From positions 1 to 64,000 of the IMG/VR virus record IMGVR_UViG_3300037110_000087: DNA of 64,000 nt, one strand, 5' to 3'. A program made the translations under genes and the position numbers. Positions 6,833-37,497 of this stretch are shown piece after piece. Numbering within the stretch: position 1 is the first letter of the stretch; each line of letters starts with the position of its first letter. The notes beneath the pieces were generated by a model. It made no database searches, was not told the origin of the DNA, and saw only the letters and a list, made by a program, of their open reading frames with translations.

Positions 6833-7264
6833 TCAGAGGCTAGGTAGTATTTGGTTCCGAAGTTCCATCAATAGACGTCCGAGATGGTTCATTCCCAACT
6901 CGTCGCAAACTCCCCAGTAAACGTCATTCCACGAGTTCCCTTCTTCCAGATAAGCATCACCTGTCCTAATGAGGGCATCCTTTAGATCCTGGTGACTAGT
7001 GAACTTATACCAAAGAATCTCCCACATCACCTGTAGTTTGACCTGATCCCAGTCTTCTCTAATCTTAATTCTGCGTCCAAGCTTCTTAGAGTCATTTGGC
7101 TCAAGATTCTGAAATTGCTTTCTGAGTTCCGTATCTGTAGTCTTCGCAGCCTGATAAGCAGCCTCGCTGTTGAGGTACATTAGACCCTCGTAGTAAATCA
7201 GACAGGGATGGTAAAAATTGGATAAGAACCGGTATTTACCATCAAATGAATCAATCTTTTCCAT
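6833..7264 (-). CDS. NADAR (YbiA-like) family protein
   Basis: FLSNFY, SEAAYQAAK, W..VK..VM..IL..KF, TGD..LEEGN.W.D.YWG, GMNHLGRLLMELR. Confidence 0.9.
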   Translation of the reverse strand: MEKIDSFDGKYRFLSNFYHPCLIYYEGLMYLNSEAAYQAAKTTDTELRKQFQNLEPNDSKKLGRRIKIREDWDQVKLQVMWEILWYKFTSHQDLKDALIRTGDAYLEEGNSWNDVYWGVCDELGMNHLGRLLMELRNQILPSL

Positions 7265-7514
7265 CCTGATACTCCTTTTTCATCTTGCTCAGCTGTTTCT
7301 TCTGCTCAGGAGTCAGTCGGGGGATTTTATATCCATCTCTGTCGCTAGGATGATAAGTGAGAGTCCAAGAATCATAGAACTCCTGGCTTTCCTTTAATAT
7401 TTCAATAGCTCTAGTAATAGAAGCTGCACCAGTACTAAAAGTGCTACCACCACCATAGGGTTCATCTCCCGTCCACATGACAACTTCAATATAGTATTCT
7501 CTTTTAAGTTTCAC
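7251..7514 (-). CDS. hypothetical protein
   Basis: 87-aa ORF. Confidence 0.65.
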   Translation of the reverse strand: MKLKREYYIEVVMWTGDEPYGGGSTFSTGAASITRAIEILKESQEFYDSWTLTYHPSDRDGYKIPRLTPEQKKQLSKMKKEYQDGKD

Positions 7515-7522
7515 GACTTCTC

Positions 7523-8209
7523 CTAAAAGTGCAGTTCATTGTTATCATATACCCCGTATTTGGCCGCCCAATCAGAGATCGCTTCAGCTATCTTCTGGTT
7601 AGATCCAAATTTATCCAACAGAATTTGATGAGCTGGGGTACCTTGAAGCCTAGGCGCGGTATTAAAATCGATCGCCCCCAAGTAAATTCCTTCTTCGGTT
7701 TTCTTAGCCACGAAATCAATGGCAAAGACAGCATTGCCTACTTTCTTACAAGCCTCTTCAATTTCTTCTTTGTTGAGAATTCCATCTCTTAGAGGACCTA
7801 GGTCACCATCACCACAGTTAGATTTCCAATCATCAGTGGACCAATGTTCAAACCAAGCTCCCTGCCCAGCTATAACGAAATAACGGAAACTTAATCCTGG
7901 AAAATCCGGAATATATTCAGAAGCGTAGCAAGAATCAACATCCTGAGGGAAGATTCCATCCTTTACTAAGAGTTTGCCCTCGCCACAATGAGCGTAGTTA
8001 TCTGTGTAAACCACCCAGGGTTTACATGGTTCGACGTATACAACTTTCTCATACTCTGGATGAACTAGACCAAGATCATCAAATAATCCAAACATAGCAG
8101 ACCGACTAACCTCCCACGAACCGACCGCGATCCGCTTGAAGACTAGATCTGATTCAAGATCAAACCAGCAGTCATAACAGTCATGATAATCAGTCTTGAG
8201 AGAGATCAT
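7523..8209 (-). CDS. possible ATP-grasp-fold protein
   Basis: C-terminal FAIDFV...AIDFNTAP resembles the RimK-type D...ExN motif; HCGEGK loop. Confidence 0.4.
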   Translation of the reverse strand: MISLKTDYHDCYDCWFDLESDLVFKRIAVGSWEVSRSAMFGLFDDLGLVHPEYEKVVYVEPCKPWVVYTDNYAHCGEGKLLVKDGIFPQDVDSCYASEYIPDFPGLSFRYFVIAGQGAWFEHWSTDDWKSNCGDGDLGPLRDGILNKEEIEEACKKVGNAVFAIDFVAKKTEEGIYLGAIDFNTAPRLQGTPAHQILLDKFGSNQKIAEAISDWAAKYGVYDNNELHF

Positions 8210-8212
8210 TGT

Positions 8213-8506
8213 TTAGATATTCTTCCAGCCGGAATCAGTGGCGATGAGGGAGACACTCGCACGGGGAGGGATCTCAGTCCCTAACATACCATCAATTCTT
8301 GCGTGTCCACCGAAAATCCCTAGGAGTGATTTACTATCATTCTTGATGATATATAATCTACCTACTCCACATCTACGAATGGAGGGAAGGTAAAAGAAAG
8401 CGTCGATATCACCTTTGTAGATGACGCAAACGTCGGTCAAATCAATCAAATAATCCTCAGTTCGCTCCACATAGCCAATTGCAACACCGATATTTAAAGA
8501 CATCAT
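8213..8506 (-). CDS. hypothetical protein
   Basis: 97-aa ORF. Confidence 0.6.
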   Translation of the reverse strand: MMSLNIGVAIGYVERTEDYLIDLTDVCVIYKGDIDAFFYLPSIRRCGVGRLYIIKNDSKSLLGIFGGHARIDGMLGTEIPPRASVSLIATDSGWKNI

Positions 8507-9156
8507 TTTACTCCAAGAATGGTGACAGGGACCACGCTGTCGATTGAGTCGATATAGAAGGCATGAGTGGGAGTGTTTCCTATTTTATCGAAAAAGTCCT
8601 GCGGGACCATGTTCGAAGCCGCAAAGATTCGGTAACTACTGGTCATCAGATCCGATACCGCACAGGATACCTGATTTGGGACGTCCTTGAGGATCGACGG
8701 GACCATTACCACATTCGGAGCCTCACCAGGATCTGGCTCGTTAATCAACTTCCACAGCACCGAACTATGCATATTGGTGATCCGGTAGGGCCGGGAACTC
8801 CTAGCATAAATGGTACTGCACATCATATGTTGAACTGTATATTCGAGCAGCTGCGCATACTTGATGTTGTCACAACAGAATAAGATGAAAGTGGAATCAG
8901 GGGCATTCACTCCATTTGGCTCCCAGGTCTTCACATATTCCTTCAGTTGATTCCACTGATTTTGTTGATCCTGGATACTCACCGAATAAAGAGGTAGACC
9001 CTTCTTCTTACCTTCCGCTGGCTTTCTGGTTATTTCGAATTCTCTGAATCTGACTTCATTGGCAAGAGAGCGCCAAAATTGCGCTGGCATTCCGGATTGG
9101 AGCAAGAATTTTTCATAGAAAGTTTTGGCTCGTTTGGAGTCGTTATGGTTGAGCAT
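8503..9156 (-). CDS. hypothetical protein, weakly reminiscent of a degenerate DnaC/IstB-like loader
   Basis: N-terminal LQSGMPAQFW; no intact Walker A. Confidence 0.6.
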   Translation of the reverse strand: MLNHNDSKRAKTFYEKFLLQSGMPAQFWRSLANEVRFREFEITRKPAEGKKKGLPLYSVSIQDQQNQWNQLKEYVKTWEPNGVNAPDSTFILFCCDNIKYAQLLEYTVQHMMCSTIYARSSRPYRITNMHSSVLWKLINEPDPGEAPNVVMVPSILKDVPNQVSCAVSDLMTSSYRIFAASNMVPQDFFDKIGNTPTHAFYIDSIDSVVPVTILGVK

Positions 9157-9283
9157 AGGGTTCCTTATCTTCAGTAACAGTAGGGACTCTTAGACAAGAC
9201 TCATCCAATCGATCAATTAGATCATACATACCATAACGGTTCAAGCGGTTGATCAGGTCAAAATAATCTTCGTCTTGGGTCAT
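9143..9283 (-). CDS. small hypothetical protein (46 aa)
   Basis: Read by hand as MTQDEDYFDLINRLNRYG...YAQP; fills the gap between the flanking genes. Confidence 0.5.
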   Translation of the reverse strand: MTQDEDYFDLINRLNRYGMYDLIDRLDESCLRVPTVTEDKEPYAQP

Positions 9284-9284
9284 A

Positions 9285-10160
9285 CTACCAACCTATGATC
9301 ACCTTTGTCCAACCTTTTGGATCAATGTCTATCTTAGTCATTAATGTATAATCACGATCAGATTCTATCAGTTTAAAACTAGGACTTGAGTTACCTAGAC
9401 TAAACCCCAGAGTTATGAAGCTGATTGGATAATTATTGTAAGGGGGCAGGTTGTACTGTAGATTTAGTTCGGGAGTCCGCTTGGCTCCATACTCATACCC
9501 AAGGATAATAGAATTTATGGGAGAAACAGACCTGATTCTAATACAAGATTCATTCACGAAATTGATTTCCGGAATAAGTAAATAAGACCCATCTCCAATA
9601 TCTTTCTTCGCAATGCGATCAATTCTGAAGTGATTTTTATCAGTAACCACCACTTTGTCATTTACGATATTTCCCTTCAAATCCAACATAATTGACTGAT
9701 TGGTCACCAATCCGTGACTATTATCAGTCACGAGAATGGAAGTATCCTCAGCTACATACTTCATCGGCCTCCATTGACCCAACCCCTTGATAATACAACT
9801 AATCATGGGTGCTAGGGTTTGCTTGAAGGAATAAGGCGTCAGCGGGTAGTTATGAAAAACTGTCTCTAGTGCATTCCCACTCTCTACTCGGAGCCATCGT
9901 CCCTTTGGTGGACGATCCGCTGGTGCGACAACTTTTAAACCATCGAAGATCTCCATATTCTCACTATCATATTTATAATGACAGTTTTCCTCATGAATAT
10001 GTCTGAAATCTCCGTGTTTGCAATCACCACTAATAATCTCGTATAGATCAGATAGGGAAGTTAGAGTAGTCTTCCAACTAGAACCGGATTCCCCTTGAGC
10101 TAGGAACCTAACGTTCTGCTTAGTTATTGGGTCAAATTTAGTGTAATATACTTCGCTCAT
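9285..10160 (-). CDS. hypothetical protein
   Basis: 291-aa ORF. Confidence 0.7.
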   Translation of the reverse strand: MSEVYYTKFDPITKQNVRFLAQGESGSSWKTTLTSLSDLYEIISGDCKHGDFRHIHEENCHYKYDSENMEIFDGLKVVAPADRPPKGRWLRVESGNALETVFHNYPLTPYSFKQTLAPMISCIIKGLGQWRPMKYVAEDTSILVTDNSHGLVTNQSIMLDLKGNIVNDKVVVTDKNHFRIDRIAKKDIGDGSYLLIPEINFVNESCIRIRSVSPINSIILGYEYGAKRTPELNLQYNLPPYNNYPISFITLGFSLGNSSPSFKLIESDRDYTLMTKIDIDPKGWTKVIIGW

Positions 10161-10848
10161 TTTCTCGGTCCAATTCAGTCCTGGTCGTTAATCTAATCGT
10201 CTTGATTTTTAGTGGATTAAATACAATTGCGTGTCTAACCTGACCATAATATGCTGATTCCATGGTTACAACTGTACCATCCCACCATTGGCTCATTCTC
10301 TCAAGATAAGACTTGGCATCGCCAGGATAAAAATCCGCCCAGACCTGAGTAAAAGCATCAAAAGGACCATCCGAGTATGTAATCATACCATTAACAGCAT
10401 CTCTTAAGGCTTTATAATAGTCTTCTCCCCAGTTTTCAAGAGTTTCTTTGTAGTCGGGTGCTCTCTTGATCAACCATTCAATGCGATCTCGGTATCTCCA
10501 AACTGAACCAACTCGTGGAACCAGTTTTCTTAGATTCAGTTTGACAAAAGCTATATTCTCTCCATAACTCCTAGCGTTTCTCAAATCTGAAGTAAAATAT
10601 AATCCAGGACCTTGGTTGTCGTTTGCACCTTTCAAACCTACATTATCAAGGACCCATTCGGATCGAGGTCGATCGGACCCATGATACCAAACTTCAGGAA
10701 GATTCTTAACGGCAGATACATAAGGGACCTGATTATGCTGGCAACCTTGGTCCCAGCTTTCGGTCAAAACCGGTTCACCCTCATCTGGTTTAATATTCCA
10801 TTTACTTGGCTTTCTGGTAATTACCTTAGCTTGAAGGATCAGTCGCAT
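10138..10848 (-). CDS. ADP-ribosyltransferase-like protein (ART-PolyVal-like) with N-terminal motif
   Basis: WYHGS...GPGLYFTSD...ARSYG...HAIVFNP. Start placed at ATG 10848 (MRLILQAKV) after GGAG. Confidence 0.7.
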   Translation of the reverse strand: MRLILQAKVITRKPSKWNIKPDEGEPVLTESWDQGCQHNQVPYVSAVKNLPEVWYHGSDRPRSEWVLDNVGLKGANDNQGPGLYFTSDLRNARSYGENIAFVKLNLRKLVPRVGSVWRYRDRIEWLIKRAPDYKETLENWGEDYYKALRDAVNGMITYSDGPFDAFTQVWADFYPGDAKSYLERMSQWWDGTVVTMESAYYGQVRHAIVFNPLKIKTIRLTTRTELDRENERSILH

Positions 10849-11380
10849 CTCGCCACTCCAGTATTCCCAAATATTCAAAGTCTTCCTGATGGTTGTAATA
10901 ATCATCCGGTTCTACGCATTCTGGATGAAGACACCATTTAGTGTTGTTCTTAAGGTCATCAACCAGAGCTACTGCTGCAGAGCACACAACATTCGCTGAT
11001 TTAAATAACTTTGCCAACATAGGTCGATGTTGCCAAGTCCTAATCACTAACCCTATCAAATGATTAAGAGCACAATCAAGGATTCCTAGGATGCCGTATG
11101 GTTTTTGATCGAATAGAACTTTTTGGGCCGAGGGGACAGTAAATCTTGGCCTCATCACGTGAATCACTTCTCCTGATATGAGTGTGTACATAGAAAGAAT
11201 GGACTGGGTTCTCACTTTCAATTGTTCCAGAAGGACCTGTTCAGAACCGACATCCTGAATCACTGCTGTATGAGAAAACTGTGATTTAGTAGCGAATCTG
11301 ATTGACTTCACGAACAGACTTTGATTAGTCTTAAATTCGTATAATAAAACATCACCATGTTTGAGTTGATCCAGATACAT
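10826..11380 (-). CDS. permuted papain-like amidase (YiiX/YebB-like NlpC/P60)
   Basis: HGDVLL...FSHTAV (His) precedes VVCSAAV (Cys), which is the permuted order. Confidence 0.75.
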   Translation of the reverse strand: MYLDQLKHGDVLLYEFKTNQSLFVKSIRFATKSQFSHTAVIQDVGSEQVLLEQLKVRTQSILSMYTLISGEVIHVMRPRFTVPSAQKVLFDQKPYGILGILDCALNHLIGLVIRTWQHRPMLAKLFKSANVVCSAAVALVDDLKNNTKWCLHPECVEPDDYYNHQEDFEYLGILEWRDATDPSS

Positions 11381-11937
11381 TATTCCACCTTAACATTTAG
11401 GGGAATTGTCTGGACTACTCTATCAGCGATTATATCTATCGAATCCGAATTCCTTATGATAATTTTGTCCCTGAAATAATCGGCCCACTTGAATTCAAAG
11501 AATGGAATAGGAGTCTTCTTCAAATTACCTAATTTGATCAATTTCCAGACCAAACTCCTGTAGGGATCATCAGCCATACCCCGAATATCCGCAGGTAACT
11601 GATAATACTCTCTCTTCCGTCCATATTGATCCACCGCACGAACCCAAGCAGCCTTTTCCATCAACTCCCAAAAATTGAGATCATCAAAAGAAGAGAAATC
11701 GGCCTGCTCAATGATGGTGACATTCTTATGACCCAATTCGTGATAGGCCCTCAACAGATGATGATGGTCATTCACATATAAACCATGCCTCGACTTTATC
11801 ACCGGCACTGGATGACTATCATCGTATTTATGGAATTCGTCCTTAGACATCTTTTCATAAATAGCCATTTTGGCCTCTATTTCTAGGAGGCCAATGGCTA
11901 TTTGTGATGGTTTTAGATCCAGTATTCTAACTCGCAT
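11380..11937 (-). CDS. ParB-like nuclease-domain protein
   Basis: LKPSQIAIG, PVPVI...YVNDHHH, DDPYRSL, PFFEFKWADYFR. Confidence 0.75.
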   Translation of the reverse strand: MRVRILDLKPSQIAIGLLEIEAKMAIYEKMSKDEFHKYDDSHPVPVIKSRHGLYVNDHHHLLRAYHELGHKNVTIIEQADFSSFDDLNFWELMEKAAWVRAVDQYGRKREYYQLPADIRGMADDPYRSLVWKLIKLGNLKKTPIPFFEFKWADYFRDKIIIRNSDSIDIIADRVVQTIPLNVKVE

Positions 11938-11970
11938 GGAATGACATCCCTCATTCCATTAGATCATGAA

Positions 11971-12762
11971 TTATGCCACCATCTGCTGAACCCAGAAGTC
12001 ATCCGCCAAATTCTCATCAAGCAGATAAGCCTTGGGCAGTAGAAAATAACCAGCGATACCCCAGGTGATATTCCAGGAGTTGCGCATAATCCAGTTACCT
12101 TCCTCGTCATAGCCCACAATCATTACTGCGTGACCACCTAGGCAATTTTCCGAAAGAAAAGGCATTGGGACACGACCGGTGACAGCAACTGCGTCGGATT
12201 CAAACGAATCATAGAGAGTGATGCCCACCATGACCGGAAATCCGCTGGCGAGGACTTGCTTGATCGAGTTCTCATCTTGATTGACTCTAGCGTACTGTGT
12301 CAGTTCGTTCTTAGCCCCGTCTGCGTAGACAATTGAGGGAGGCTTGATGGCGAATTTGGTAATGTCATAGGCCCAATCAATCTCGTTGCATGCACCTAGG
12401 GTATTAAGAGTTTTAATGACATCTCTTAACATGCAACCGGAATCAGAAGCTACCGAATTTTCCATCGCACGAGCATTATAATAGATAGCTAGTCTGGAAG
12501 GAGTCCAGATATCCAACTTAGCCTTGGCACGAGCGAAAATATAGGCGGCTCCACCAGAGTGAGCCGCACAGGATCCCAATTGGCCCTGATCCCAGATCGG
12601 AGGCATGAAAGGAGAAGTACGGAGATCTACTGAGGGAGGGGGTACGACAGAAGGAAAACTGGCCTTAAAGTCGCGATGATCAGGTACGTCTGGCTTCCAA
12701 CCATAACGGTTGAACTTCTGTTCTTCTTTAAAAAACCAGCTAAATAACTGCTTGAATCCCAT
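11971..12762 (-). CDS. papain-like cysteine peptidase (family C1A)
   Basis: DQGQLGSCAAH, GGHAVMIVGY, RNSW, WGIAGYF. Confidence 0.9.
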   Translation of the reverse strand: MGFKQLFSWFFKEEQKFNRYGWKPDVPDHRDFKASFPSVVPPPSVDLRTSPFMPPIWDQGQLGSCAAHSGGAAYIFARAKAKLDIWTPSRLAIYYNARAMENSVASDSGCMLRDVIKTLNTLGACNEIDWAYDITKFAIKPPSIVYADGAKNELTQYARVNQDENSIKQVLASGFPVMVGITLYDSFESDAVAVTGRVPMPFLSENCLGGHAVMIVGYDEEGNWIMRNSWNITWGIAGYFLLPKAYLLDENLADDFWVQQMVA

Positions 12763-13101
12763 TTATTCTCCTTTAGCGTACAATTCTTGGTAGGTCTTAT
12801 TCTCGAATTCAGCATGATATTCGTGGTAAGAATCCCAAGTGCTATGATCCTTAACCCTAATCATCTTGAAATCTCCCTTGATGCTAATGGCATCACCATG
12901 TTCGTCCTGAAACAAACCATGCTGATCCACAAATACTCCTCGCAACTTCCAGACATCCATAATCCGACCACCAGAGTCATTACGGACAATATAATCACCG
13001 GTGTAAGAGCCAAAGAATCCACCATCATGAGCAATATGATTCTGAAGATTAGCACAGCCGACAAGACTGAATAGAGCTAGTGCAAGTATAATTCTCTTCA
13101 T
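12763..13101 (-). CDS. putative lipoprotein
   Basis: MKRIILALALFSLVGC: signal peptide with lipobox. Confidence 0.7.
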   Translation of the reverse strand: MKRIILALALFSLVGCANLQNHIAHDGGFFGSYTGDYIVRNDSGGRIMDVWKLRGVFVDQHGLFQDEHGDAISIKGDFKMIRVKDHSTWDSYHEYHAEFENKTYQELYAKGE

Positions 13102-14306
13102 TATTGCTCCTCGTTCACTTGGCTTAATAGAATCATAATTCTACGGTCAGGATCAGTAAAGAACACTACGCTAGTAGCCTCTGTGATCCGATCAAAGAAC
13201 TGATCAATCCCAAACTGGGGAGCCATCTGCAGGACTGCATTCATACACCGAATAGGAAGGAGGACCTCATGATCTTCATTATTCCAAGTCAGATTGAGGA
13301 TACTCCGATCTGAAATAACTGAACTGCCAGAGCTAGCGAATCCTTTCAACTTGACTTGACTCGCGCCATTTTTTGGACTCAGGACGAAGCTAGGTTCATC
13401 ATTCTTCCTAGCTACACCGATTGATTCGATATATTTCAGCTTCTCTCTCAGTCTAACTGGATCAATCACTCCACTGAAGTTACATCGATCAATTACCATG
13501 AAGCTATTGATAATCGCTTCCAGATCAGGGAATTCTTCATGACTCATGAGAGAGTGGGAAATCATGATCCCACCAGAAACGAATGTGACATTATTTCGAT
13601 CCGACATGATATAGAGATCTTGACCCTCAACCAGATTAATCCCAATCTGCCAGACACTAGGAGGAAGCATCAGATTAAAAGCATCACCAGTCAGATTAGT
13701 GACGCCATCGAAGACGAAGTTGGAAAGAAAGATCTCCTGAGTAGTGGAAGATTCAATTTTGACTTTGTTCGTCGCGTCCACGCAAACATTGACTACACTG
13801 ACGGCCTGAGCCTGGGAGCGCTTGTAGACAAATGCCGCAGCCCCTTCAATCAGCTTCCCAAAGTAATCAGTGGCGGTGCTAGTCATCTGGAATCTGGGTT
13901 CACCATGCTGACGGACAATAAATGACCCCGGAGTCTCTGAGAACTCTGATTCGAACTTAATATCACTCATCTGAGGACTATCTGGATATTTGATATAGAT
14001 CCGGTCCGTGATCTGAATCTCAATTGGCTGATCCGGTGAGAAGTTCTCAGGGAGATTCTGGAACAACGAACTATTCACCATGGCAAAAGTTCCTAATCCC
14101 TCTTCGATCTCGATATCTACATTGACGACACCATAAATCTCTTTGCGGCTTACTTCCATCGCTAGCTGCTGCTTATCACCGACAGTCATCAGGGTGATAC
14201 GCATATCAAACTGGATGTCCTCAGACGCACCAATCTTTGCGATGGCTTTCATCATCTTATTGAACGGCTGCAAAGACTGTTTTAGAACCTTAAACTTAAT
14301 GGACAT
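13101..14306 (-). CDS. DNA polymerase III beta-clamp-like sliding clamp (divergent)
   Basis: 401 aa with repeated helix/beta pattern. SHSLMSHEEFPDLEAII corresponds to the DnaN G.FP.Y..VI motif. A DnaX-like gene is present in the window. Confidence 0.6.
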   Translation of the reverse strand: MSIKFKVLKQSLQPFNKMMKAIAKIGASEDIQFDMRITLMTVGDKQQLAMEVSRKEIYGVVNVDIEIEEGLGTFAMVNSSLFQNLPENFSPDQPIEIQITDRIYIKYPDSPQMSDIKFESEFSETPGSFIVRQHGEPRFQMTSTATDYFGKLIEGAAAFVYKRSQAQAVSVVNVCVDATNKVKIESSTTQEIFLSNFVFDGVTNLTGDAFNLMLPPSVWQIGINLVEGQDLYIMSDRNNVTFVSGGIMISHSLMSHEEFPDLEAIINSFMVIDRCNFSGVIDPVRLREKLKYIESIGVARKNDEPSFVLSPKNGASQVKLKGFASSGSSVISDRSILNLTWNNEDHEVLLPIRCMNAVLQMAPQFGIDQFFDRITEATSVVFFTDPDRRIMILLSQVNEEQ

Positions 14307-14352
14307 CCATTCTCCTACAAGTAAGTGTATTTTCTATAACCGATTAAAAATT

Positions 14353-14583
14353 CTAAATAGTAGGCCAGGACTTGATTCTAAAAACAGAATTAGCAATTGT
14401 GCCGGTTGCTAGAACAATAGAACCTTCTGTGGTATCCATTTCGAAGTAACTGCCACCACCAGCTATTCCCTCGATGCCTTTCTGCAACTCTGTTAGTTCA
14501 TCGGCAGTTACTGTCTCGACTACACTTTCGAAAGTTCCCACTGGGGTGATTGCTGTAACCCTGACGCTAAAAACTTCTCCCAT
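14353..14583 (-). CDS. hypothetical protein
   Basis: 76-aa ORF, RBS AAGGAG. Confidence 0.65.
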   Translation of the reverse strand: MGEVFSVRVTAITPVGTFESVVETVTADELTELQKGIEGIAGGGSYFEMDTTEGSIVLATGTIANSVFRIKSWPTI

Positions 14584-14593
14584 TCTGTTCTCC

Positions 14594-15031
14594 TTAGTCC
14601 CAAGTCACATCAACTACGTTTCTATCAAGGTCGACGTCCAGGGCCATATAAAACAACCAGGAGGCGTTTTCAAAGAACTTTAGGTAGGTAGCCGCATCGA
14701 GAGTATCGACAAAAATCTCCTCTTCGGTCATGGTCTTAGCAGACTCAACCGCTTCATCATCAAAGATTCTGAAGCAATGAACAGCCCAGTCATCACCAGA
14801 TAGTTTGGCAAACTCTTCCCAATCAAAAGGATCAGTGATGACACCAGTTTCTTCTAGATACTCCCTAGACATTCCCTGTGCTGGAGTCTCGAATACTTCT
14901 ACTTTGCCACCAACACCATTGACTTTCCCAGCCTGATTGGACGGATGGGTCTTATGAATCAATACACACTTTCGGGGGGAAGCCGGTGTATCCGTCCGTG
15001 AGAAAGCGAATCCAACTGAATATCTTTGCAT
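14594..15031 (-). CDS. NUDIX hydrolase
   Basis: NGVGGKVEVFETPAQGMSREYLEETG Nudix box. Confidence 0.85.
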   Translation of the reverse strand: MQRYSVGFAFSRTDTPASPRKCVLIHKTHPSNQAGKVNGVGGKVEVFETPAQGMSREYLEETGVITDPFDWEEFAKLSGDDWAVHCFRIFDDEAVESAKTMTEEEIFVDTLDAATYLKFFENASWLFYMALDVDLDRNVVDVTWD

Positions 15032-15033
15032 AC

Positions 15034-16035
15034 TTATACCTTTATAAATGCCTCTATAGGCAGGATGTTATTGGAATCGAGCAGCCCATTGTCTACCAGC
15101 AGTTTGAGAGTGTCATACTGGGTGGATCTGACTGTGTTGTACAAATAAACCGGGTCAATGGACTGTTTGATTCCAAATGAATCAAACACCTGACATAGAC
15201 TGGCCAATTCTGGGCCAAAATAACCAAAGGGAACCCTAAGATTAGTCATAATCTTGGCCAGGATATAGTTCACCCTGGCCTTATCACCAAAGTCTGTGAT
15301 CTCTTTGGCCCAATTCTTTGTTGTTTTGGTTTTCGCCTTCGGGATCAATTCGTCGACTCGCGCTAATAGATCTTCCACGGAAGAAGCAGCCTGGACTGCC
15401 GGTTCACCGATCTTCTTAGGCAGTCCAAACACCTTAGGAATATTATCAGAGGGATCACCAAAGAACGACTTATAAAGGGGGATCTTGTCGGCAGTGACCC
15501 CGAACTCCCCCTTGATGTGTTCCTCTGTAATCTCTTCAAAACCGTCCATACTAGATTTAAAAATATGAACCTTAGGGTTGACTTTCAACTGCCAAAGATC
15601 CTTATCTGATGCGACGATGTTTACCTTGATTCCCTTCTCGGAACACTGGGTAGAAAGGCTACCGATACAATCATCAGCCTCATTATTCAGATCCATCGCT
15701 ACTACAGTCGACAAGGTTGTAAAGACCCAATTACGAAGGTATTTCCGAATTTCTTTGTTCTGTTCGTAGTTGTCTTCCTTCTTACGATCCTGTCTGTTCG
15801 CCTTATACTCAGGAAAAATGTCATACTTCCACTTTGGAAAGCCATCAAGAACGAAGATTGGATTAGTGAATCGGTTGTAAATGGTCTGAACCGACTGGTA
15901 CATCATGTGGGCCGGTCCAGCATAGACATTCCCCACGAAACTACTGGCTCTAGTGGCGGATGGACTATAGACACACCTATACATCAGCCAACTAGTATCA
16001 ATCAAAGTGATTTCTTTAAAAGTCACAAGAGACAT
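15034..16035 (-). CDS. 5'-3' exonuclease / flap endonuclease (PolA N-terminal type)
   Basis: LIDTSWLMYR, YKANR, EADD, SDKDLWQL, GDPSDNIP. Confidence 0.9.
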   Translation of the reverse strand: MSLVTFKEITLIDTSWLMYRCVYSPSATRASSFVGNVYAGPAHMMYQSVQTIYNRFTNPIFVLDGFPKWKYDIFPEYKANRQDRKKEDNYEQNKEIRKYLRNWVFTTLSTVVAMDLNNEADDCIGSLSTQCSEKGIKVNIVASDKDLWQLKVNPKVHIFKSSMDGFEEITEEHIKGEFGVTADKIPLYKSFFGDPSDNIPKVFGLPKKIGEPAVQAASSVEDLLARVDELIPKAKTKTTKNWAKEITDFGDKARVNYILAKIMTNLRVPFGYFGPELASLCQVFDSFGIKQSIDPVYLYNTVRSTQYDTLKLLVDNGLLDSNNILPIEAFIKV

Positions 16036-16064
16036 TTTTATCCTTAGTGTTGTATCTGTAACAG

Positions 16065-16292
16065 CTAAACCACTGGACCAGAACGATAGAAGCTGATATT
16101 GATCCTACCGAATTTTTTATTCACCCTTAGATCGCAAACAGTTTCAACCCTAGTCTGCTGGAACAGATCCGCAGTGAACTCCTCACATACCCGGTTGATC
16201 TGTTCTAAAAGCTCAGGGGTAATAATCAGACCCTCGTATTCCTTGAGCTTCTTATCAAGAATTTCAAAATAAGCATATACCTCTTGATCCAT
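16065..16292 (-). CDS. hypothetical protein
   Basis: 75-aa ORF. Confidence 0.6.
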   Translation of the reverse strand: MDQEVYAYFEILDKKLKEYEGLIITPELLEQINRVCEEFTADLFQQTRVETVCDLRVNKKFGRINISFYRSGPVV

Positions 16293-16630
16293 TAGTCAGT
16301 CTCGCCACCATCGGAATCAGGTTCAGGTAGAGTTAAGCTCTCTATCACCTTTATCACCTTTAACTCATCTGCTCGTGATATTGAGCAACTTTCTTTTGAC
16401 GGGTTGGCTCTAACAATGCTTCCATCTATACCCAGTCCGTCCTCCGGACTCAGATTATAGGTGCGCTCGATGCTCTTGCCCCAGAGATCAATCTCTTCCT
16501 CAATTCTCTTCCTCAATTCCACTGCATCCCAGAGAGCAGCTTTCAGCTTCAATATATTCATATCGGCTGTATCCCTCTTTCTCATGAGACTAGCATGATG
16601 AATCATGAGATTAGGTTCAATCTTTTCCAT
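16292..16630 (-). CDS. hypothetical protein
   Basis: 112-aa ORF, RBS GGAG. Confidence 0.65.
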   Translation of the reverse strand: MEKIEPNLMIHHASLMRKRDTADMNILKLKAALWDAVELRKRIEEEIDLWGKSIERTYNLSPEDGLGIDGSIVRANPSKESCSISRADELKVIKVIESLTLPEPDSDGGETD

Positions 16631-16668
16631 ATATGACTCCAGATCTTAAATATATAACCTGAAATCAC

Positions 16669-17877: not shown

Positions 17878-17895
17878 TGGACAGTCCTCTATCCC

Positions 17896-17904
17896 AGTTT
17901 ACCA
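17896..17904 (-). promoter_or_regulatory. extended -10 element (TGgTAAACT)
   Basis: Upstream of the GAGG RBS of 16669..17877. The same TGnTA[AT]A[AC]T form occurs at four other gene starts. Confidence 0.45.
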
Positions 17905-17919
17905 CCAGGATTAGAGACT

Positions 17920-18744: not shown

Positions 18745-18764
18745 ATTTTAGTCTAACAGATATG

Positions 18765-18786
18765 AAAAAGGGGCCTTGCGGCCCCC
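18765..18786 (-). terminator. Rho-independent terminator
   Basis: GGGGCC-4 nt-GGCCCC hairpin followed by a U5 run on the minus strand. Confidence 0.75.
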
Positions 18787-28047: not shown

Positions 28048-28380
28048 GTGCAAAAGAATCCCTTGTCTAAAATCTGGTGGACGAAGAGTCCTGGACGAAG
28101 ACCCCAGAGGTTACCTTTCTGCCTTCCTGTGTCAGAGGAAGAAGTTAGACGAGATCCAGCGATCAAAGGAAAAATACCTAGGAGAACTACCTTCTCTGTA
28201 ACTGAACCTGAGTTGGAAAGAAAAGCAGTGCAGGATGAGGACGAATGGGATAATCTGTGTGGTAAGTATCATTACAAGGTAAGCCGAGATCCAAGTGACA
28301 AGACTAGTACCGCTTGGTTCAATGGTAAACAAGTTGGATACTGGGATGGAGAGGATCAGGAAGGCTGGGTTGGGATATGA
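28048..28380 (+). CDS. hypothetical protein (start uncertain, possibly GTG 28129)
   Basis: ORF ends with a 4-nt overlap on the next gene. Confidence 0.5.
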   Translation: MQKNPLSKIWWTKSPGRRPQRLPFCLPVSEEEVRRDPAIKGKIPRRTTFSVTEPELERKAVQDEDEWDNLCGKYHYKVSRDPSDKTSTAWFNGKQVGYWDGEDQEGWVGI

Positions 28381-29729
28381 AACTAATCCTAAGAGCTATG
28401 ATCAGGAAAGCAGTCAATGAATGGAGAGGCTGGGTCACTGGGGAGTATTGGATCGAAAAGGACGGAGGCGAGACTGAATGTAGTGGTGATGGTGAATATG
28501 ACCACGAGAGTTACGCCAAAGAGGTCATTGCCAATCATTATTCAGATGAGGCCCAACAAACACTGTTCCGATTCTTTGGTCTGGGACCCGATGGGAAAGA
28601 CCTGCCAGGAAATCGAAAGACCAAAGCCAAGGAAAATCGAATTGAATATCCTATGGAATTTAGTCAATGTGTTGATTATGAAGAAGTGGTCAGAATGATG
28701 TGTGAAGATAAGTATCCGGCAAGGGAAGAGGATTTCATGCCGGATGCTCTCATGTATAGACATGAAATCAGGAAGTTCTTCCAGAAGTACTTTGAAGCAG
28801 TTCATGTAGTTAATAATTACTTTGGTTGCTGGATTGTAACCGACGACATAGTAAAGAATATTGGGACTTACCTAATGAATAGGTCCGAAGAGTATAGTTA
28901 TGATTATAACGAACGGGATGTTTTGTATTTAGAGGAAATTGGAGTAAAAAAGGTCAAAGAATACAAAGTGATCGAATTCTTAGTCTGTGATCATGCGACA
29001 GATTTAAGGAAAATTCAGCAGGATATCGAGAGACTCGCTGATGGCAGCATGAAAGATACTGAACCCACTGTCAAGAACAAGGAAAAACTACCCAACGAGA
29101 AGCCCAACAAATGGGTTAAGCCGAAGGTCACCACTCAGAACTATATTGATAAAACTCCTCTTGAAGATCGCATGACCTGCAGACAAAGAGAACGTGACAA
29201 CGCGTTTAATCAAGAAGCAGGCTGGGAAGATCCGCTCCCTGGCCAATTCGACTACTGGTTCAAAGGATCAAAGGTCGTGGACAAGAAAGGTCGCCCTCTT
29301 GTCTGCCATCATGGCACTCCTGATAGACGGAGATTAGACGAATCGCAGAGATTCGAAAGTAAGAATAACGCGTATTTTTTCACTCCTGATGTAAATGTTG
29401 CCAAGACTTACGCTAATCCTACGAGAGCGTGGGACTATCAGGAATGTGTCCCAGGTGTTTTGAGCTTCTTCCTTAAGATTGTTGATCCTATGATTGTTGA
29501 TTGGAGAGGGCAGAGATTCCATGGAACTCAAAAGGTAATTGAAGAGGCTCGCGAGAAGGGTCATGATGGCGTGATTATCAACAATGTGATCGATAATTAT
29601 TCAAATTATGATATTAATAAGCGTAATAAGCCGACCACCGTATATGTGGTGTTCAATCGAAATCAGATGAAGTCAATTGATAGTGAGTTGTTTACAGATA
29701 GCGACGAATTCACTGCCTCTAGGGAATAA
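28377..29729 (+). CDS. multidomain protein with C-terminal ART-PolyVal-like ADP-ribosyltransferase domain and N-terminal motif
   Basis: KGSKVVDKKGRPLVCHHGT...YFFTPD..VAKTYA...GHDGVII.NV.D...VYVVFN..QMKS; starts MKLILRAMI. Confidence 0.8.
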   Translation: MKLILRAMIRKAVNEWRGWVTGEYWIEKDGGETECSGDGEYDHESYAKEVIANHYSDEAQQTLFRFFGLGPDGKDLPGNRKTKAKENRIEYPMEFSQCVDYEEVVRMMCEDKYPAREEDFMPDALMYRHEIRKFFQKYFEAVHVVNNYFGCWIVTDDIVKNIGTYLMNRSEEYSYDYNERDVLYLEEIGVKKVKEYKVIEFLVCDHATDLRKIQQDIERLADGSMKDTEPTVKNKEKLPNEKPNKWVKPKVTTQNYIDKTPLEDRMTCRQRERDNAFNQEAGWEDPLPGQFDYWFKGSKVVDKKGRPLVCHHGTPDRRRLDESQRFESKNNAYFFTPDVNVAKTYANPTRAWDYQECVPGVLSFFLKIVDPMIVDWRGQRFHGTQKVIEEAREKGHDGVIINNVIDNYSNYDINKRNKPTTVYVVFNRNQMKSIDSELFTDSDEFTASRE

Positions 29730-29761: not shown

Positions 29762-31339
29762 ATGTCCATGTCTGACTTGCCCAAGGCTTTTTTACAGAGA
29801 GGTTTGTTCGTCCCAGCTAATTGGGTAGATCAAAATCCAGGCATTCTGGCTCATTATACCTATGTGTTTAAAGAGAAGTCAATGGAACTGGGTGAGATGA
29901 TGACCGTCCATAATGAGATCCTGACTTATTCCCGGATGGGCGAATATTATGAATTTTCCAGGGGTGATCTGACTAAGACTTACAACCTGTTTGGCAGTCA
30001 CTTCGATATCAGGGATGGACGCTCTAATGTCCCTATTGGAATTCCATTTCAGTTCAATCCCAACAAGTCTCTAAAGGATGCTCAGAAGCAAGCCCTAAGA
30101 GAGTTTATTACCCCTAATATTGGTGGTGTAATTGAGGCTCCCCCTGCATTTGGAAAGACGGTCTTGATGGTCGCTTATATCAGTATGGTTCAACAAAAGA
30201 CACTTATCATCGTGAATAAGACTGGCCTAGTGGAGCAGTTCATTGACAGAGCTAGGGAGTTCTCTAATCTTAATGAATTAGAAACCAAGAAAACCAAGCT
30301 AATTGGCAAGTTAGCATTTAAGAAGGGTGTGCCAATCACTTATCCAATCACCGTAACCACTTTCCAAATGTTTAGTACTGAAGATGGATTGGCTAGAGTC
30401 CAGAGTATTGCTAACGAGTTTGGAGTGGTGTTCGTAGATGAATGTCATCGCTCCCCTGCAGCTACTTTGATCAAGGTAATTTCCGGTCTAAACCCATTAA
30501 TTAAGGCCGGTGTCAGTGCCACCCCGGAGAAGCGAAAAGATCAGAAACACGCGCTATTGCCAGATCTGATTGGGCCAGTGCGGGTGAAACCATTGGTCAA
30601 GAATGACTGTGTAGTGAAATTTGTCATGGGCCAGTACATTCCGTTTAAGAACCCCAATCCTCGATTCCAACTGGCAGTAGCCGTTCTAACTAATAGTATC
30701 GCCAGGAATCGCAAGATCTGTACCAATGTGATCGCGGATATTAATGTTGGACATCGGGTAATGATTTTAACAATGTTTATTAAGCATTGTGATCTGCTCA
30801 AATCAATGCTGGAGACAGAGGGGGTTCGTGTTGAACGATTGATTGGGAAATCTTCCAAGAAAGAACGCGATGATGTGACAAACCGGCTCAATGCCCTTGA
30901 TAATTGTATTGATTATATTAAGGAACGTAGCTCAGTGGAGATTGATTGGGATGAGATCCTGACTTGGAAAGATTTATTCGATGCGAGCGTCAATCTGCCC
31001 CTGGAAACTCAGGAGAAGATTAAATATTATTATTCAATCCGACTAGATTGCGTAGTTGCCACTTCAGGTCTATTAGGTGAGGGATCTGATATCCCCTGTC
31101 TGAGCAGTCTTCATTTGGTCGTTCCCCTGGCCAACGAGATCGCTATTGAGCAATCAATTGGGAGAATCCAACGGACCTTCAAGCGGAAATTAGCCCCTCT
31201 AGCTACCTACTACAGTGACCCCGGTCTAGGAATCTTTAGAGGTTGCAAGATGAGGGTGAAGAAAATCTGCGAGGGCTTGGGTTATACTATAATTGATGAA
31301 ACTGTAAAGAAAGATTTAAACGATGATGGTACAATCTAA
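29762..31339 (+). CDS. superfamily 2 helicase (UvsW/XPB-like)
   Basis: APPAFGKT, VDECHR, SAT, QSIGRIQR. Confidence 0.9.
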   Translation: MSMSDLPKAFLQRGLFVPANWVDQNPGILAHYTYVFKEKSMELGEMMTVHNEILTYSRMGEYYEFSRGDLTKTYNLFGSHFDIRDGRSNVPIGIPFQFNPNKSLKDAQKQALREFITPNIGGVIEAPPAFGKTVLMVAYISMVQQKTLIIVNKTGLVEQFIDRAREFSNLNELETKKTKLIGKLAFKKGVPITYPITVTTFQMFSTEDGLARVQSIANEFGVVFVDECHRSPAATLIKVISGLNPLIKAGVSATPEKRKDQKHALLPDLIGPVRVKPLVKNDCVVKFVMGQYIPFKNPNPRFQLAVAVLTNSIARNRKICTNVIADINVGHRVMILTMFIKHCDLLKSMLETEGVRVERLIGKSSKKERDDVTNRLNALDNCIDYIKERSSVEIDWDEILTWKDLFDASVNLPLETQEKIKYYYSIRLDCVVATSGLLGEGSDIPCLSSLHLVVPLANEIAIEQSIGRIQRTFKRKLAPLATYYSDPGLGIFRGCKMRVKKICEGLGYTIIDETVKKDLNDDGTI

Positions 31340-31364: not shown

Positions 31365-32081
31365 ATGAAACTGACACTTATCGCAACTGTCACTAGAGAA
31401 GCAAACAAATACATCGTGAATAAGCCTGGACACAAGGATAGCAAGGGTAAACCCGCTCCCTGGTGTGTAGTGGACAAGAAGGGTAAGATCATTGGCAGTC
31501 ATGCTACCAAGGAATTAGCTGAAAAAGCGTTCCGTGGTATGGAAATGAATAAGCATGCTGAATACCTACCTAATATCATCAACAAGCGTACTCCTGAGAA
31601 CAACAAGAGTAAGATCGAGCACAACAAGGACGTCGAGAAGGACGAGAAGAATGAACGTTTCTCTCCCAAGGGCGAGGACGAGAAGAATGATCGCTTTGAA
31701 CCCAAGAAGCTGTTGAAGGATAAGCCAGCTGAGAGACTCAATCCCAAGGTGGAGACTGACAAGCCCAATACTCGCTTTGAACCCAGGGGTCTGCCCAAGG
31801 ACGAGAAGAACGACCGTTTCTCAGGCAAAACCGCCAAGAAAGAGATCCCTTTTGATTCTGCGAGTCATCTCAAGGCTATTTGGGAAGGTTCTGTGATCGC
31901 CAAGATCCTGAAGAAGCTGGAAGCTGCTGGTCCTTTCTCCGTGGAAGAGGGCAAGTCTGCTGCCAGACAGGCATTGACTAAGGTCGAAGACACCTTCATC
32001 AGTCGCTATTCTGAGGAGGAATGGGACGAGATGAAACCAAAGCTCTTGACCAAGATCGTCAGAGCACTCAAAGTCAAGTAA
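31365..32081 (+). CDS. charged repeat-containing protein with N-terminal motif; candidate internal head protein
   Basis: Starts MKLTLIATV. Contains WCVVDKKGKIIGSHATKELAEKAFRGME.NKH and DEKNxRFxPK repeats; biased codons. Confidence 0.7.
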   Translation: MKLTLIATVTREANKYIVNKPGHKDSKGKPAPWCVVDKKGKIIGSHATKELAEKAFRGMEMNKHAEYLPNIINKRTPENNKSKIEHNKDVEKDEKNERFSPKGEDEKNDRFEPKKLLKDKPAERLNPKVETDKPNTRFEPRGLPKDEKNDRFSGKTAKKEIPFDSASHLKAIWEGSVIAKILKKLEAAGPFSVEEGKSAARQALTKVEDTFISRYSEEEWDEMKPKLLTKIVRALKVK

Positions 32082-32082
32082 T

Positions 32083-32322
32083 ATGAAACTACATCTGATA
32101 GCCACTCTCAATTTAGATATTAAACTCCTTGATTGGAGTAGTGGAGATATATGCGTTAATGGGAAAGATATGACCGGCCCTGAGGCCGAGAAGTTTATTC
32201 TGAGCCACGAAGATAGCACCCCCGTAGCTCTTTCTAGAGCCTATAGTAAGAGACATAGAGGGATCCACAGAACTACCGTGGGTGATCTGCGCAGGGAAAA
32301 GAATGGCTGGTGGAGCTGGTAA
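32083..32322 (+). CDS. hypothetical protein with N-terminal motif
   Basis: Starts MKLHLIATL. Confidence 0.7.
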   Translation: MKLHLIATLNLDIKLLDWSSGDICVNGKDMTGPEAEKFILSHEDSTPVALSRAYSKRHRGIHRTTVGDLRREKNGWWSW

Positions 32323-32363
32323 GATCCTTTCTCGCCATGGAAGCCAATAAACACGGATAATTG

Positions 32364-32705
32364 ATGAAACTTCACCTTAGGGCTTCACTTGGGTATATCA
32401 CTAAACAACAAATGCTCGATCAAGGGGGTAGTGGATACCTTGATCGAGCATTTCTTTGTATGATACCCGTCTTGAAGATAGAAGGGAGGGAGCCTAATCC
32501 TGCTGCTTCCGATGAGGAAGGGTATAAGAAGGGCCGAAAAATATTGGTTCCTATCGAAGTAGAATACCGAGCGAGTGAAGATTTGTATTACTTATATGCA
32601 GGCAATCATCGAGTAGTTCAAGCAGAAATCAATGGGGATCAGATGATCAAGGCGTGGGTCCAACCTGATCAAGGACGAGTGGGTCCTTCTGCAAGGAAAT
32701 TATGA
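32364..32705 (+). CDS. ParB/Srx-like domain protein with N-terminal motif
   Basis: PIEVEY...YYLYAGNHRVVQAEING...IKAWV; starts MKLHLRASL. Confidence 0.65.
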   Translation: MKLHLRASLGYITKQQMLDQGGSGYLDRAFLCMIPVLKIEGREPNPAASDEEGYKKGRKILVPIEVEYRASEDLYYLYAGNHRVVQAEINGDQMIKAWVQPDQGRVGPSARKL

Positions 32706-36374: not shown

Positions 36375-36382
36375 CGAAATTC

Positions 36383-36391
36383 TGCTAAACT
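36383..36391 (+). promoter_or_regulatory. extended -10 element (TGcTAAACT), probable leaderless start
   Basis: Ends 7 nt before ATG 36399; no SD sequence. Confidence 0.4.
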
Positions 36392-36398
36392 GGATACT

Positions 36399-36953
36399 AT
36401 GGAACTATATTCCTATCAATCTCCTGAGGTTGTGGCACTAATCCACACACAAGGTCGTTATTTACCTGCTTGGAATAGGTGTAATTGTTTCGAAGAGGAC
36501 CAGTGGCAGTTTGAGTGTTCCTACCGGTTTATGGTGGATCAATATAACCGGATTAAAAAGACCAACTTTGATACACCCCCAGTTTTTTGGTACACTGAAT
36601 TGAGACAGGCCAAACGGAACATGAAGTATGTCAAGCGAGGGGTGATGCTCATTGCTCAAGTTCCGGATGAAGCGATCCTGCAATATGACTCAGAAGATTG
36701 GTATGGAGCTTTGAACCTTTATGGAATTGGGTTTGGTCATAATTATGGTGATGTACCTAATTGGGAGCGTTTTGATAAGATCTGGGACGCTTACAAAAAG
36801 AACCCCAGAGCTATGGAGGAAAGCTGGAAGGAAATCTTCCATCTCCCTTTGTGCAAGAGGGAGAGAGTGGAAGTTCATGCGGTTACTATGGAAATCCAAC
36901 TGGAGTGGATATTCCAACAAGATATATTCCAACAAGATATTGTGCCACTCTAA
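36399..36953 (+). CDS. DUF3841-like protein
   Basis: SYRFMVDQY...PVFWY...QVPDEAILQYDSEDWYGALN. Confidence 0.5.
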   Translation: MELYSYQSPEVVALIHTQGRYLPAWNRCNCFEEDQWQFECSYRFMVDQYNRIKKTNFDTPPVFWYTELRQAKRNMKYVKRGVMLIAQVPDEAILQYDSEDWYGALNLYGIGFGHNYGDVPNWERFDKIWDAYKKNPRAMEESWKEIFHLPLCKRERVEVHAVTMEIQLEWIFQQDIFQQDIVPL

Positions 36954-37002
36954 ATAGTCAAACCGTGGTTTAATAATAAAAGCAATTTTCACCAGGGATA
37001 CA

Positions 37003-37497
37003 ATGAAGCTTAATTTGAAAGCCAGAGTCATAAAGCAGGAAGGCAACCTCTGGGGCCTCCGGGCAGAATACTGGGACAGTGGATCCGGTGCCGCAGGGTG
37101 TATTTTCTTCTGTCCAGCTACTCGCAGATGGTTAGTATCATTCCGGTCCGCGCATGTCATGGAACCTCATACCTGGGGTATCTGGGGTGGCAAACTAGAT
37201 GGAAGGGAAACTCCGCTTGAAGCTGTGAAGAGAGAAGCCGAAGAGGAAACTGGACACTCTGCTGAGGGTATTGAGTTCATTCCTTCTTACGTCTACCAAG
37301 ATGGATCTTTTAAATACCGAAATTTTATAGCTATCGTGGATGCTGAGTTCGAACCAGAGATGGACTGGGAGACTGAAGGTTTTAGATGGTGTAAGATTAA
37401 TGAATTTCCCAATAAGCTACATTTTGGGTTGAAGGCACTTTATCCTTATCTGGTTGATTTTGATAAAGGTTATAATAACGAGGAGAAACAAGCATGA
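37003..37497 (+). CDS. NUDIX hydrolase with N-terminal motif
   Basis: WGIWGGKLDGRETPLEAVKREAEEETG; starts MKLNLKARV. Confidence 0.9.
   Translation: MKLNLKARVIKQEGNLWGLRAEYWDSGSGAAGCIFFCPATRRWLVSFRSAHVMEPHTWGIWGGKLDGRETPLEAVKREAEEETGHSAEGIEFIPSYVYQDGSFKYRNFIAIVDAEFEPEMDWETEGFRWCKINEFPNKLHFGLKALYPYLVDFDKGYNNEEKQA

Follow-up and report, generated by a model that had tools for sequence, protein, structure and literature searches.

In the conflict between phages and bacteria, ADP-ribosylation is one of the main fronts. ADP-ribosyltransferases (ARTs) of the ART-PolyVal family carry an active site composed of a His in strand 1, a Tyr in strand 2 and an Asp in strand 5, and are grouped by prediction with the protein-modifying ARTs (PMC5512222); no ART-PolyVal enzyme with a known target exists. 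Polyvalent proteins are predicted to be packaged and delivered together with the DNA (Iyer et al.; PMC5512222, PMC9503650). The internal proteins of phage T4 have only a capsid-targeting sequence in common (PMC3012670). For large myoviruses, earlier work has already presented NAD+/ADP-ribose repertoires whose members occur together and has raised the possibility of packaging in the head (PMC9503650, PMC7824862), and Iyer et al. (2022, PMC9503650) proposed packaging of both ARTs and NUDIX proteins on the basis of MuF/portal fusions and late-gene neighbourhoods. Furthermore, phage NADARs of three clades counter DarTG1 (PMC11257639). Here, we have analyzed a stretch of 64,000 nucleotides, called the window throughout, which comprises bases 1-64000 of a virus contig of 307,124 bp from a Joint Genome Institute (JGI) metagenome (IMGVR_UViG_3300037110_000087; CheckV completeness 98%). 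The contig belongs to an uncultured jumbo myovirus from peat. Two ART genes and one NUDIX gene of the window share a short N-terminal peptide, the tag; judged by sequence comparison, the encoded proteins are stand-alone versions of effector domains that are fused into giant polyvalent proteins in other phages and in conjugative elements. The five domains considered here and their likely individual roles are of known kinds; the new element is an address tag on single effector genes, which takes the place of the fusions and neighbourhoods considered by Iyer et al. (2022) as the candidate packaging signal. Among open-access papers and preprints, we found no earlier description of a shared tag on stand-alone ART-PolyVal, NUDIX and SET proteins of a jumbo phage that is not T4-like. 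The five genes are:

6833 to 7264, minus strand: untagged NADAR of the YbiA subfamily, 143 amino acids (Pfam and TIGR02464)
10138 to 10848, minus strand: tagged ART-PolyVal-like protein, 236 amino acids, with H56, Y84 and Y95 present (numbered from the tag Met)
14594 to 15031, minus strand: untagged NUDIX hydrolase, 145 amino acids, Nudix box at residues 42-63
28377 to 29729, plus strand: tagged ART, 450 amino acids; tag at residues 1-12, orphan region to about residue 290, ART-PolyVal domain at about residues 296-445 (window about 29262-29711)
37003 to 37497, plus strand: tagged NUDIX hydrolase, 164 amino acids, Nudix box at residues 63-84

A preliminary description of the window had named these five domains and had placed the tag on both ARTs and on one of the NUDIX proteins. 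Pfam searches confirmed the domains, with 10138-10848 below the threshold but matching phrog_25279 and the metagenomic protein P0007. The distribution of the tag was evident from the protein starts, which are MKLILRAMIRKA, MRLILQAKVITR and MKLNLKARVIKQ for the two ARTs and NUDIX 37003-37497, MEKIDSF for the NADAR and MQRYSVG for NUDIX 14594-15031. The JGI gene call for 10138-10848 also starts at the tag Met.

The C-terminal domain of 28377-29729 can confidently be regarded as a member of the ART-PolyVal family with a predicted ART fold and a conserved H-Y-D site. Pfam ART-PolyVal (PF18760) matched residues 302-439 with an E-value of 2.7e-13 and 51.3 bits (cut-off 31.2); in a scan of the genome the same match reached 52.5 bits. 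An AlphaFold2 (AF2) model of the domain, calculated from a family alignment of 52 sequences, had a mean predicted local distance difference test (pLDDT) score of 89. Its best Foldseek matches were the catalytic domains of tankyrase and PARP, with weak E-values (from 6.6e-3) and high probabilities. VIA-align, a search independent of Foldseek, returned members of the ART superfamily as 49 of its 50 best chains, among them PARP1/2 (Z 7.6, root-mean-square deviation 4.4-4.5, 119-121 residues aligned), the toxins NatT, MbcT and ParT, diphtheria toxin, exotoxin A and AcrIF11; it also listed chain B of the cyanophage A4 pre-ejectosome (9k3a_B, Z 5.8). Since the single Z-scores are middling, the case for the fold rests on this uniform listing of ARTs. 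The predicted catalytic residues are H312 (29310-29312), Y333 (29373-29375), Y345 (29409-29411) and D406 (29592-29594). In the model, H312, Y333 together with Y345, and D406 lie on strands 20-25, 44-47 and 109-116/117, which correspond to strands 1, 2 and 5; Y345 is located one turn past Y333. Across the 52 family members, the His, Y345 and the Asp of the GHDG motif (D397) are invariant and D406 is nearly so. For this protein, the proposal of an ART was thus upheld by the profile search above the cut-off, by the structure search and by the presence of H312, Y333 and D406.

A word-index protein search found no homologue for the ART domain of 28377-29729 alone. An exhaustive search was required because most ART relatives are far longer than the query; phmmer with residues 290-450 then yielded 3408 representatives at E<=1e-3, most of them inside proteins of 1000-6000 residues and some with up to 16 copies of the domain. 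The family thus comprises more than 3400 sequences that represent clusters at 50% identity. Matches of the ART domain to phage records numbered only four, and a PDB profile search with the ART family gave no solved sequence relative. For the N-terminal part of about 290 residues, neither Pfam nor Atlas gave a match. The 29 closest ART relatives carry LPD3/22/23/37/38, PBECR1/3, ResIII, SprT-like, RadC, GNAT, DUF3990 and NUDIX domains. The window proteins are thus like the polyvalent proteins (Iyer et al. 2017, PMC5512222) in the PF18760 family, in the H-Y-D site and in the partner domains of their ART relatives (NUDIX, ResIII, zincin, PBECR, LPD), but unlike them the ARTs and the tagged NUDIX of the window are single-domain proteins of 164-450 residues with a short shared tag instead of a fusion.

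The tagged NUDIX protein 37003-37497 matched Pfam NUDIX above the cut-off (E 5.6e-15), and the Nudix box GX5EX7REUXEEXGU is intact in both NUDIX proteins. Neither of them reached an NCBIfam subfamily cut-off (best scores 16-28 bits at cut-offs of 98-475; NudE 20.2 at a cut-off of 169), and the PDB matches of both were limited to the Nudix box. Hence, neither NUDIX is assignable by sequence to an ADP-ribose subfamily, and a tie of either protein to ADP-ribose found no support, as all subfamily scores lie far under the cut-offs and the untagged protein looks MutT-like. A NUDIX of the tagged type occurs in four of the 149 best ART-PolyVal relatives: P0051 (1501 amino acids; its domain is 43% identical to the tagged NUDIX, E 2e-32), P0042 (2043 amino acids) and P0033 (727 amino acids), both with ART-PolyVal and NUDIX, and P0085 (340 amino acids), which consists of ART-PolyVal and NUDIX only. 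No counterpart of the untagged NUDIX or of the NADAR was found in these 149 proteins. Domain fusions in other elements therefore connect the tagged ART with the tagged NUDIX, but not the two untagged genes.

In Salmonella and Klebsiella phages of 350 kb, homologues of the tagged NUDIX are encoded beside the tail sheath stabiliser gene. The related NUDIX of Achromobacter phage Motura forms the C-terminal part of a 270-amino-acid protein encoded a few genes downstream of a topoisomerase. Metagenomic homologues have variable N-termini without the tag. On an NCBI assembly contig of 330 kb (L063), three consecutive ART-PolyVal-rich genes at 8001-20046 encode proteins of 1501, 228 and 2284 amino acids; the first includes a NUDIX related to the tagged one, and cpYpsA/SLOG and TelA genes are located upstream.

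The second tagged protein, 10138-10848, is probably a diverged member of the ART-PolyVal family, according to its sequence matches. Its Pfam score of 19.3 bits is under the cut-off of 31.2; it matched phrog_25279 with 6e-17, and the only homologue found by the word-index search, P0007, is 43% identical and carries PF18760. In hhalign comparisons with the family, the N-terminal half gave 93% probability and E 2.8e-7 over 47 columns which include the His and Tyr motifs; the C-terminal half aligned weakly (E 5e-4). The AF2 model had a pLDDT of 55.9, too poor for use, and no fold search was therefore carried out with it. As a consequence, the preliminary call of two ARTs stands for 28377-29729 on fold and H-Y-D site, and for 10138-10848 it is weakened by the low score, the fold not recovered and an Ala at the position of the Asp. 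P0007 itself is a protein of 180 amino acids from a metagenomic contig of 973 bp; it begins MKIKIKNKSII, an alternating pattern which loosely recalls the tag.

A genome-wide motif scan combined with a position matrix identified the tag M-[KR]-L-x-L-x-A-x-[VIL]-K-[KR] on 25 proteins and, in diverged form, on two to three more. Its short form reads M-K-L-x-L-x-A-x-V-K-K and its 12-residue form M-K-L-[H]-L-x-A-x-[VIL]-K-[KR]-[AS], with an alternating hydrophobic/basic pattern. The tagged seeds were set off from about 2990 other ATG-initiated candidate open reading frames by a wide score gap, and a chance pattern is ruled out. All 27 proteins have Ala7 without exception. Leu3 and Leu5 occur in 25 of the 27, with six to seven different codons in use; synonymous codons are many at all three positions. 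Upstream of the tagged genes, no conserved nucleotide motif except the ribosome-binding site was found. The varied synonymous codons, together with the ribosome-binding site as the only upstream motif, indicate selection on the tag peptide itself. Once the tag was removed, similarity remained in only two pairs among the 27 proteins; the tag is thus a module attached to different proteins. Behind it, four proteins have ART-PolyVal (truncated in one of them), and NUDIX and SET domains also occur; the remainder are orphans. Eight tagged genes are located in the window. Besides the three already listed, the tagged genes include (positions from 98515 onward refer to the whole contig):

3709 to 4629, minus strand: tagged orphan of 306 amino acids with the tag motif, MKLTLKAKIARS
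20315 to 20752, minus strand: tagged orphan of 145 amino acids with the tag motif, MKLHLTANLKKA
31365 to 32705, plus strand: three tagged orphan genes in tandem, each with the tag motif (31365-32081, 32083-32322 and 32364-32705)
98515 to 100400, minus strand: array of four tagged genes
98515 to 99624, part of this array: further ART-PolyVal genes
118035 to 119243, plus strand: tagged protein of 402 amino acids with a second, internal tag-like sequence, MELHLVATIQKK, at residue 153
143663 to 144415: three tandem tagged genes of 83, 93 and 69 codons, exactly between the large terminase (TerL) and portal genes
211510 to 211983, minus strand: tagged SET-domain protein (Pfam E 4e-13)

TerL is encoded at 140836-143196 and the portal protein at 144852-146888 of the whole contig. 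One further tagged gene follows the portal region, and four are located among tail-fibre and baseplate genes. The proteins encoded between TerL and portal are all acidic (isoelectric points 4.3-5.1), and the first two are weak paralogues of one another. The array 98515-100400 includes a minimal tagged ART-PolyVal of 140 amino acids and a tagged protein of 98 amino acids that contains only the N-terminal half of the ART domain, with the His motif and without strand 5, which makes it a truncated copy or a fragment. Gene 118035-119243 may have arisen when two tagged genes, once separate, became fused.

The tag resembles the T4 capsid-targeting sequence (PMC3012670) as an N-terminal peptide of about 10 residues which is the sole shared feature of diverse small proteins, often encoded in tandem. 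Moreover, the T4 cargo protein Alt is an ART injected with the DNA, and the tag is likewise found on ARTs. The differences are that the tag sequence is unrelated to that of T4 and lacks the L/I-x-E motif, that the phage is not T4-like (no match to Gp23 or S77, with control genomes also silent), and that its ARTs are of the H-Y-D and not of the R-S-E type. By analogy with the T4 sequence and with the polyvalent proteins, it is plausible that the tagged proteins are packaged and injected; the position of tagged genes between TerL and portal and the occurrence of ART-PolyVal relatives in polyvalent proteins lend circumstantial support. We thus tentatively favour, as a possibility that falls just short of being probable, the reading that the tag loads the effectors into the head for injection and that the NADAR and the MutT-like NUDIX act as ordinary cytoplasmic enzymes. 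That the lineage replaced giant fused effectors by a portable tag loading about 27 proteins (ARTs, a NUDIX, a SET-domain methyltransferase and about 20 orphans) into the capsid appears a rather unlikely extension.

Concerning packaging and injection, the targets and the interplay among the five genes, we infer the following course. Each effector would bear its 12-residue N-terminal address, which most likely would dock it into the assembling head, and it would be ejected into the next host in the manner of the T4 internal proteins and Alt. Inside the host, the H-Y-D ART would ADP-ribosylate host macromolecules at the expense of host NAD+, and the co-delivered NUDIX may cleave some nucleoside-diphosphate-X compound. 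The NADAR, presumed to be a glycohydrolase for base-linked ADP-ribose, would be made in the cytoplasm and most likely would protect the nucleic acid of the phage against DarT1-type DNA/RNA ARTs of the host; the untagged MutT-like NUDIX would be tied to replication.

Several observations weigh against this proposal. Neither an L/I-x-E cleavage motif nor a conserved Glu follows the tag in the 27 proteins. No related phage was found in which conservation of the tag could be tested, and the tag was not seen in the first 50 kb of phage PaBG. Among the large genes after the portal, major capsid protein, scaffold and protease were not found with PHROGs and Atlas, and the genome gave no match to S77 protease or Gp23, although the control genomes gave none either. 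A run search located the 307-kb sequence in no RNA run. The tagged genes of the window are situated in arrays with DnaB, PolA, gyrase and helicase genes. As to 10138-10848, the strand-5 Asp column of the family falls on Ala199, with Glu197 two residues upstream, in an alignment of low confidence, and the protein may, by its sequence, be inactive. In vivo, the toxicity of DarT1 was not relieved by E. coli YbiA (PMC11125620), which bears on the proposed role of the NADAR. A complex prediction for the portal (144852-146888) and the tagged 69-amino-acid protein (144206-144415) had a score of 0.00 and counts neither way. A search with a degenerate DNA pattern for MKLHLKA returned 24 contigs with single hits, about the chance expectation, and none with several tags.

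Because they are located in replication gene arrays, the tagged genes may be early like T4 ModA/ModB and not late. The tag could then be a cytoplasmic address, either a timing degron or a hub-docking peptide, on effectors that act after fresh synthesis, as do ModA/ModB; we regard this as unlikely, yet as the foremost rival explanation. It would agree with the placement of all eight tagged window genes in arrays with replication genes, from which no terminator above chance strength separates them, with the missing protease cleavage motif after the tag, and with the alternating hydrophobic/basic pattern, which would suit strand docking onto any partner. It agrees less well with the small tagged genes between TerL and portal and inside the tail module, and the tagged domain types occur in polyvalent proteins, for which delivery together with the DNA is predicted (PMC5512222). 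The neighbourhood, furthermore, leaves the timing of expression unfixed, as one structural gene is present in the window:

16669 to 17877, minus strand: head-decoration-like protein of 402 amino acids (phrog_2647, E 1e-54; head-decoration and virion structural PHROGs)

This gene is embedded in the replication gene array, and gene order therefore does not separate early from late functions. In a promoter scan, sigma-70-like sites were no commoner than in shuffled sequence; a TG-n-TATAAT-like motif was enriched upstream of about 25 genes of all kinds and did not distinguish tagged from untagged genes.

If packaging is the function of the tag, the injected proteins of an uncultured jumbo phage can be listed from the sequence alone; a short peptide would then load cargo into a non-T4 capsid, and a capsid-targeting code would exist outside the T4 group. 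If not, the gene set is an ordinary case of the catalogued NAD+/ADP-ribose repertoire of jumbo phages. In addition, the compact single-domain ARTs and the ART-NUDIX fusion of 340 amino acids should be much more amenable to expression and assays than polypeptides several thousand residues long.

It is improbable that no coordinated system exists at all and that five unrelated accessory genes merely share one stretch of 30 kb, with 10138-10848 as a pseudo-enzyme and the NUDIX proteins as house-cleaning enzymes. NAD/ADP-ribose domains are frequent in large myoviruses, where they occur in combination (PMC9503650), the genes are scattered among unrelated ones, the NUDIX subfamilies are unassigned, and the Ala at the family Asp position of 10138-10848 would fit; the tag common to both ARTs and one NUDIX, together with the ART-NUDIX fusions elsewhere, argues for a common use of these three.

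The identification of 6833-7264 as a NADAR in the preliminary description was confirmed. By its sequence, the protein is an ordinary phage enzyme of the YbiA type, and its active site is intact. It matched Pfam NADAR with E 4.9e-25 and 89 bits (cut-off 35) and TIGR02464 with 78.5 bits, above the cut-off. Upon alignment to the P. nicotianae NADAR (8bau) and E. coli YbiA (2b3w), its residues E34, K41, E108, D114 and W117 correspond to E43, K50, E125, D130 and W133 of the P. nicotianae enzyme, which serve ADP-ribose binding and catalysis (PMC11543638). The residue in the last strand is Glu in the YbiA subfamily, Asp in DarT1-linked NADARs and His in T4 gp30.3/AdfN (PMC11125620); 6833-7264 has Glu and hence belongs neither to the DarT1-associated (DarG1-like) nor to the AdfN type. 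It shares with the anti-DarTG1 phage NADARs AdfN, NADAR-Bas32 and NADAR-Bas60 (PMC11257639) the fold, the Glu/Lys/Glu residues and the organization as a stand-alone phage gene, and differs from T4 AdfN and the DarT1-linked enzymes in this YbiA-type Glu. YbiA-type enzymes strip guanine- and cytosine-linked ADP-ribose in vitro (PMC11125620, PMC12945103), and E. coli YbiA cleaves guanine-linked ADP-ribose in vitro (PMC11125620, PMC11543638). By analogy, an anti-DarT1-like role, which is a known kind of function, is plausible. NADARs of about 50% identity are present in 533 phage records. The genome contains this one NADAR and no Macro domain; the called neighbours of the NADAR had no Pfam match save DnaB, and no DarT was found among them.

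Less probable still than a mere coincidence of unrelated genes is a writer/eraser arrangement, as suggested earlier, in which the ARTs of the phage itself carry out an ADP-ribosylation that the NADAR reverses, or from which it protects phage nucleic acid, like the toxin-antitoxin pair YarT-YbiA: a YbiA-type NADAR is indeed the antitoxin of an H-Y-[EDQ]-clade ART in myxobacteria (PMC11125620), and NADAR and 10138-10848 are only 3 kb apart on the same strand of one gene array, but six genes intervene, a NADAR occurs in none of the 149 best ART-PolyVal relatives, the NADAR type is common in phages (533 records as compared to four for the ART domain), and the pairing stays conjectural because NADARs are known only for base-linked ADP-ribose (PMC11543638, PMC12945103) and ART-PolyVal is predicted to modify proteins (PMC5512222). 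Neither linkage nor fusion thus supports the pairing.

The untagged NUDIX 14594-15031 (Pfam E 7e-8, above the cut-off) is probably a MutT-like nucleotide-pool enzyme, as judged from its matches. Its gene directly follows that of the 5'-3' exonuclease (15034-16035); the best PDB and NCBIfam matches were MTH1/MutT, restricted to the Nudix box, and the few phage homologues are annotated as MutT-like. Three neighbouring features of the tagged genes were:

11380 to 12762, minus strand: ParB-like nuclease (PF08857, E 4e-44) and papain-family cysteine peptidase (PF00112, E 2e-16), by Pfam
29762 to 31339, plus strand: untagged SNF2/ResIII helicase, directly downstream of the tagged ART 28377-29729
36399 to 36953, plus strand: DUF3841 protein (E 1.6e-9), between GyrB and the tagged NUDIX

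An orphan gene for 184 amino acids (10826-11380) separates the tagged ART-like gene 10138-10848 from the upstream ParB-like/papain pair. The papain-like peptidase, a type unusual in phages, could be a candidate tag-processing enzyme. ResIII is also fused to ART-PolyVal in relatives, which for the helicase 29762-31339 is context only. The DUF3841 gene was considered as a member of the ART clan and dropped, as it is not among the clan families named in PMC7955679.

No close relative of the phage was found in the phage collection or in IMG/VR, the latter queried with the ART and with TerL. By TerL, the nearest cultured phages are PaBG, at 32% identity the closest, and jumbo myoviruses of Erwinia, Dickeya and Burkholderia, at about 30% identity; for the family A DNA polymerase, the best matches show about 24% identity. 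Near-identical sequence is present in several peat metagenomes. Replication genes in the window comprise DnaB, PolA, 5'-3' exonuclease, SNF2 helicase, GyrB and clamp loader. A protein of 745 amino acids encoded after the portal resembles a repeat protein.

The toolkit of ADP-ribose enzymes placed in the window by the preliminary description does contain the five genes, but the ADP-ribose/NAD+ gene set extends across the whole genome and is not specific to the window. Like the jumbo phages whose NAD+/ADP-ribose networks were described by Iyer et al. (2022, PMC9503650), this large myovirus combines genes for ART, NADAR, NUDIX, SLOG and NAD+ salvage. Two further features of the whole contig belong to this set:

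191713 to 194241, plus strand: untagged protein of 842 amino acids with zincin, ART-PolyVal (58.8 bits) and a second zincin motif; two HExxH motifs flank the ART
263512 to 270251, plus strand: NAD+ supply cluster of NAD kinase, T4-type RNA ligase 1, NMNAT-NUDIX and NAMPT

If polyvalent proteins are defined by at least two unrelated effector domains per polypeptide, the ARTs and NUDIX of the window, each with one recognisable domain, fall outside the definition, and only the 842-amino-acid protein qualifies; it is a small classical polyvalent protein beside tagged single-domain ARTs in one genome. The gene of the tagged SET protein is directly upstream of that of an Acb1 (anti-CBASS) homologue; genes for a SLOG/YpsA protein, a second cytidylyltransferase and a clamp-loader delta-like protein are close by. 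In the NAD+ supply cluster, the NMNAT-NUDIX fusion is NatV-like (367 amino acids) and the NAMPT is NadV-like (458 amino acids).

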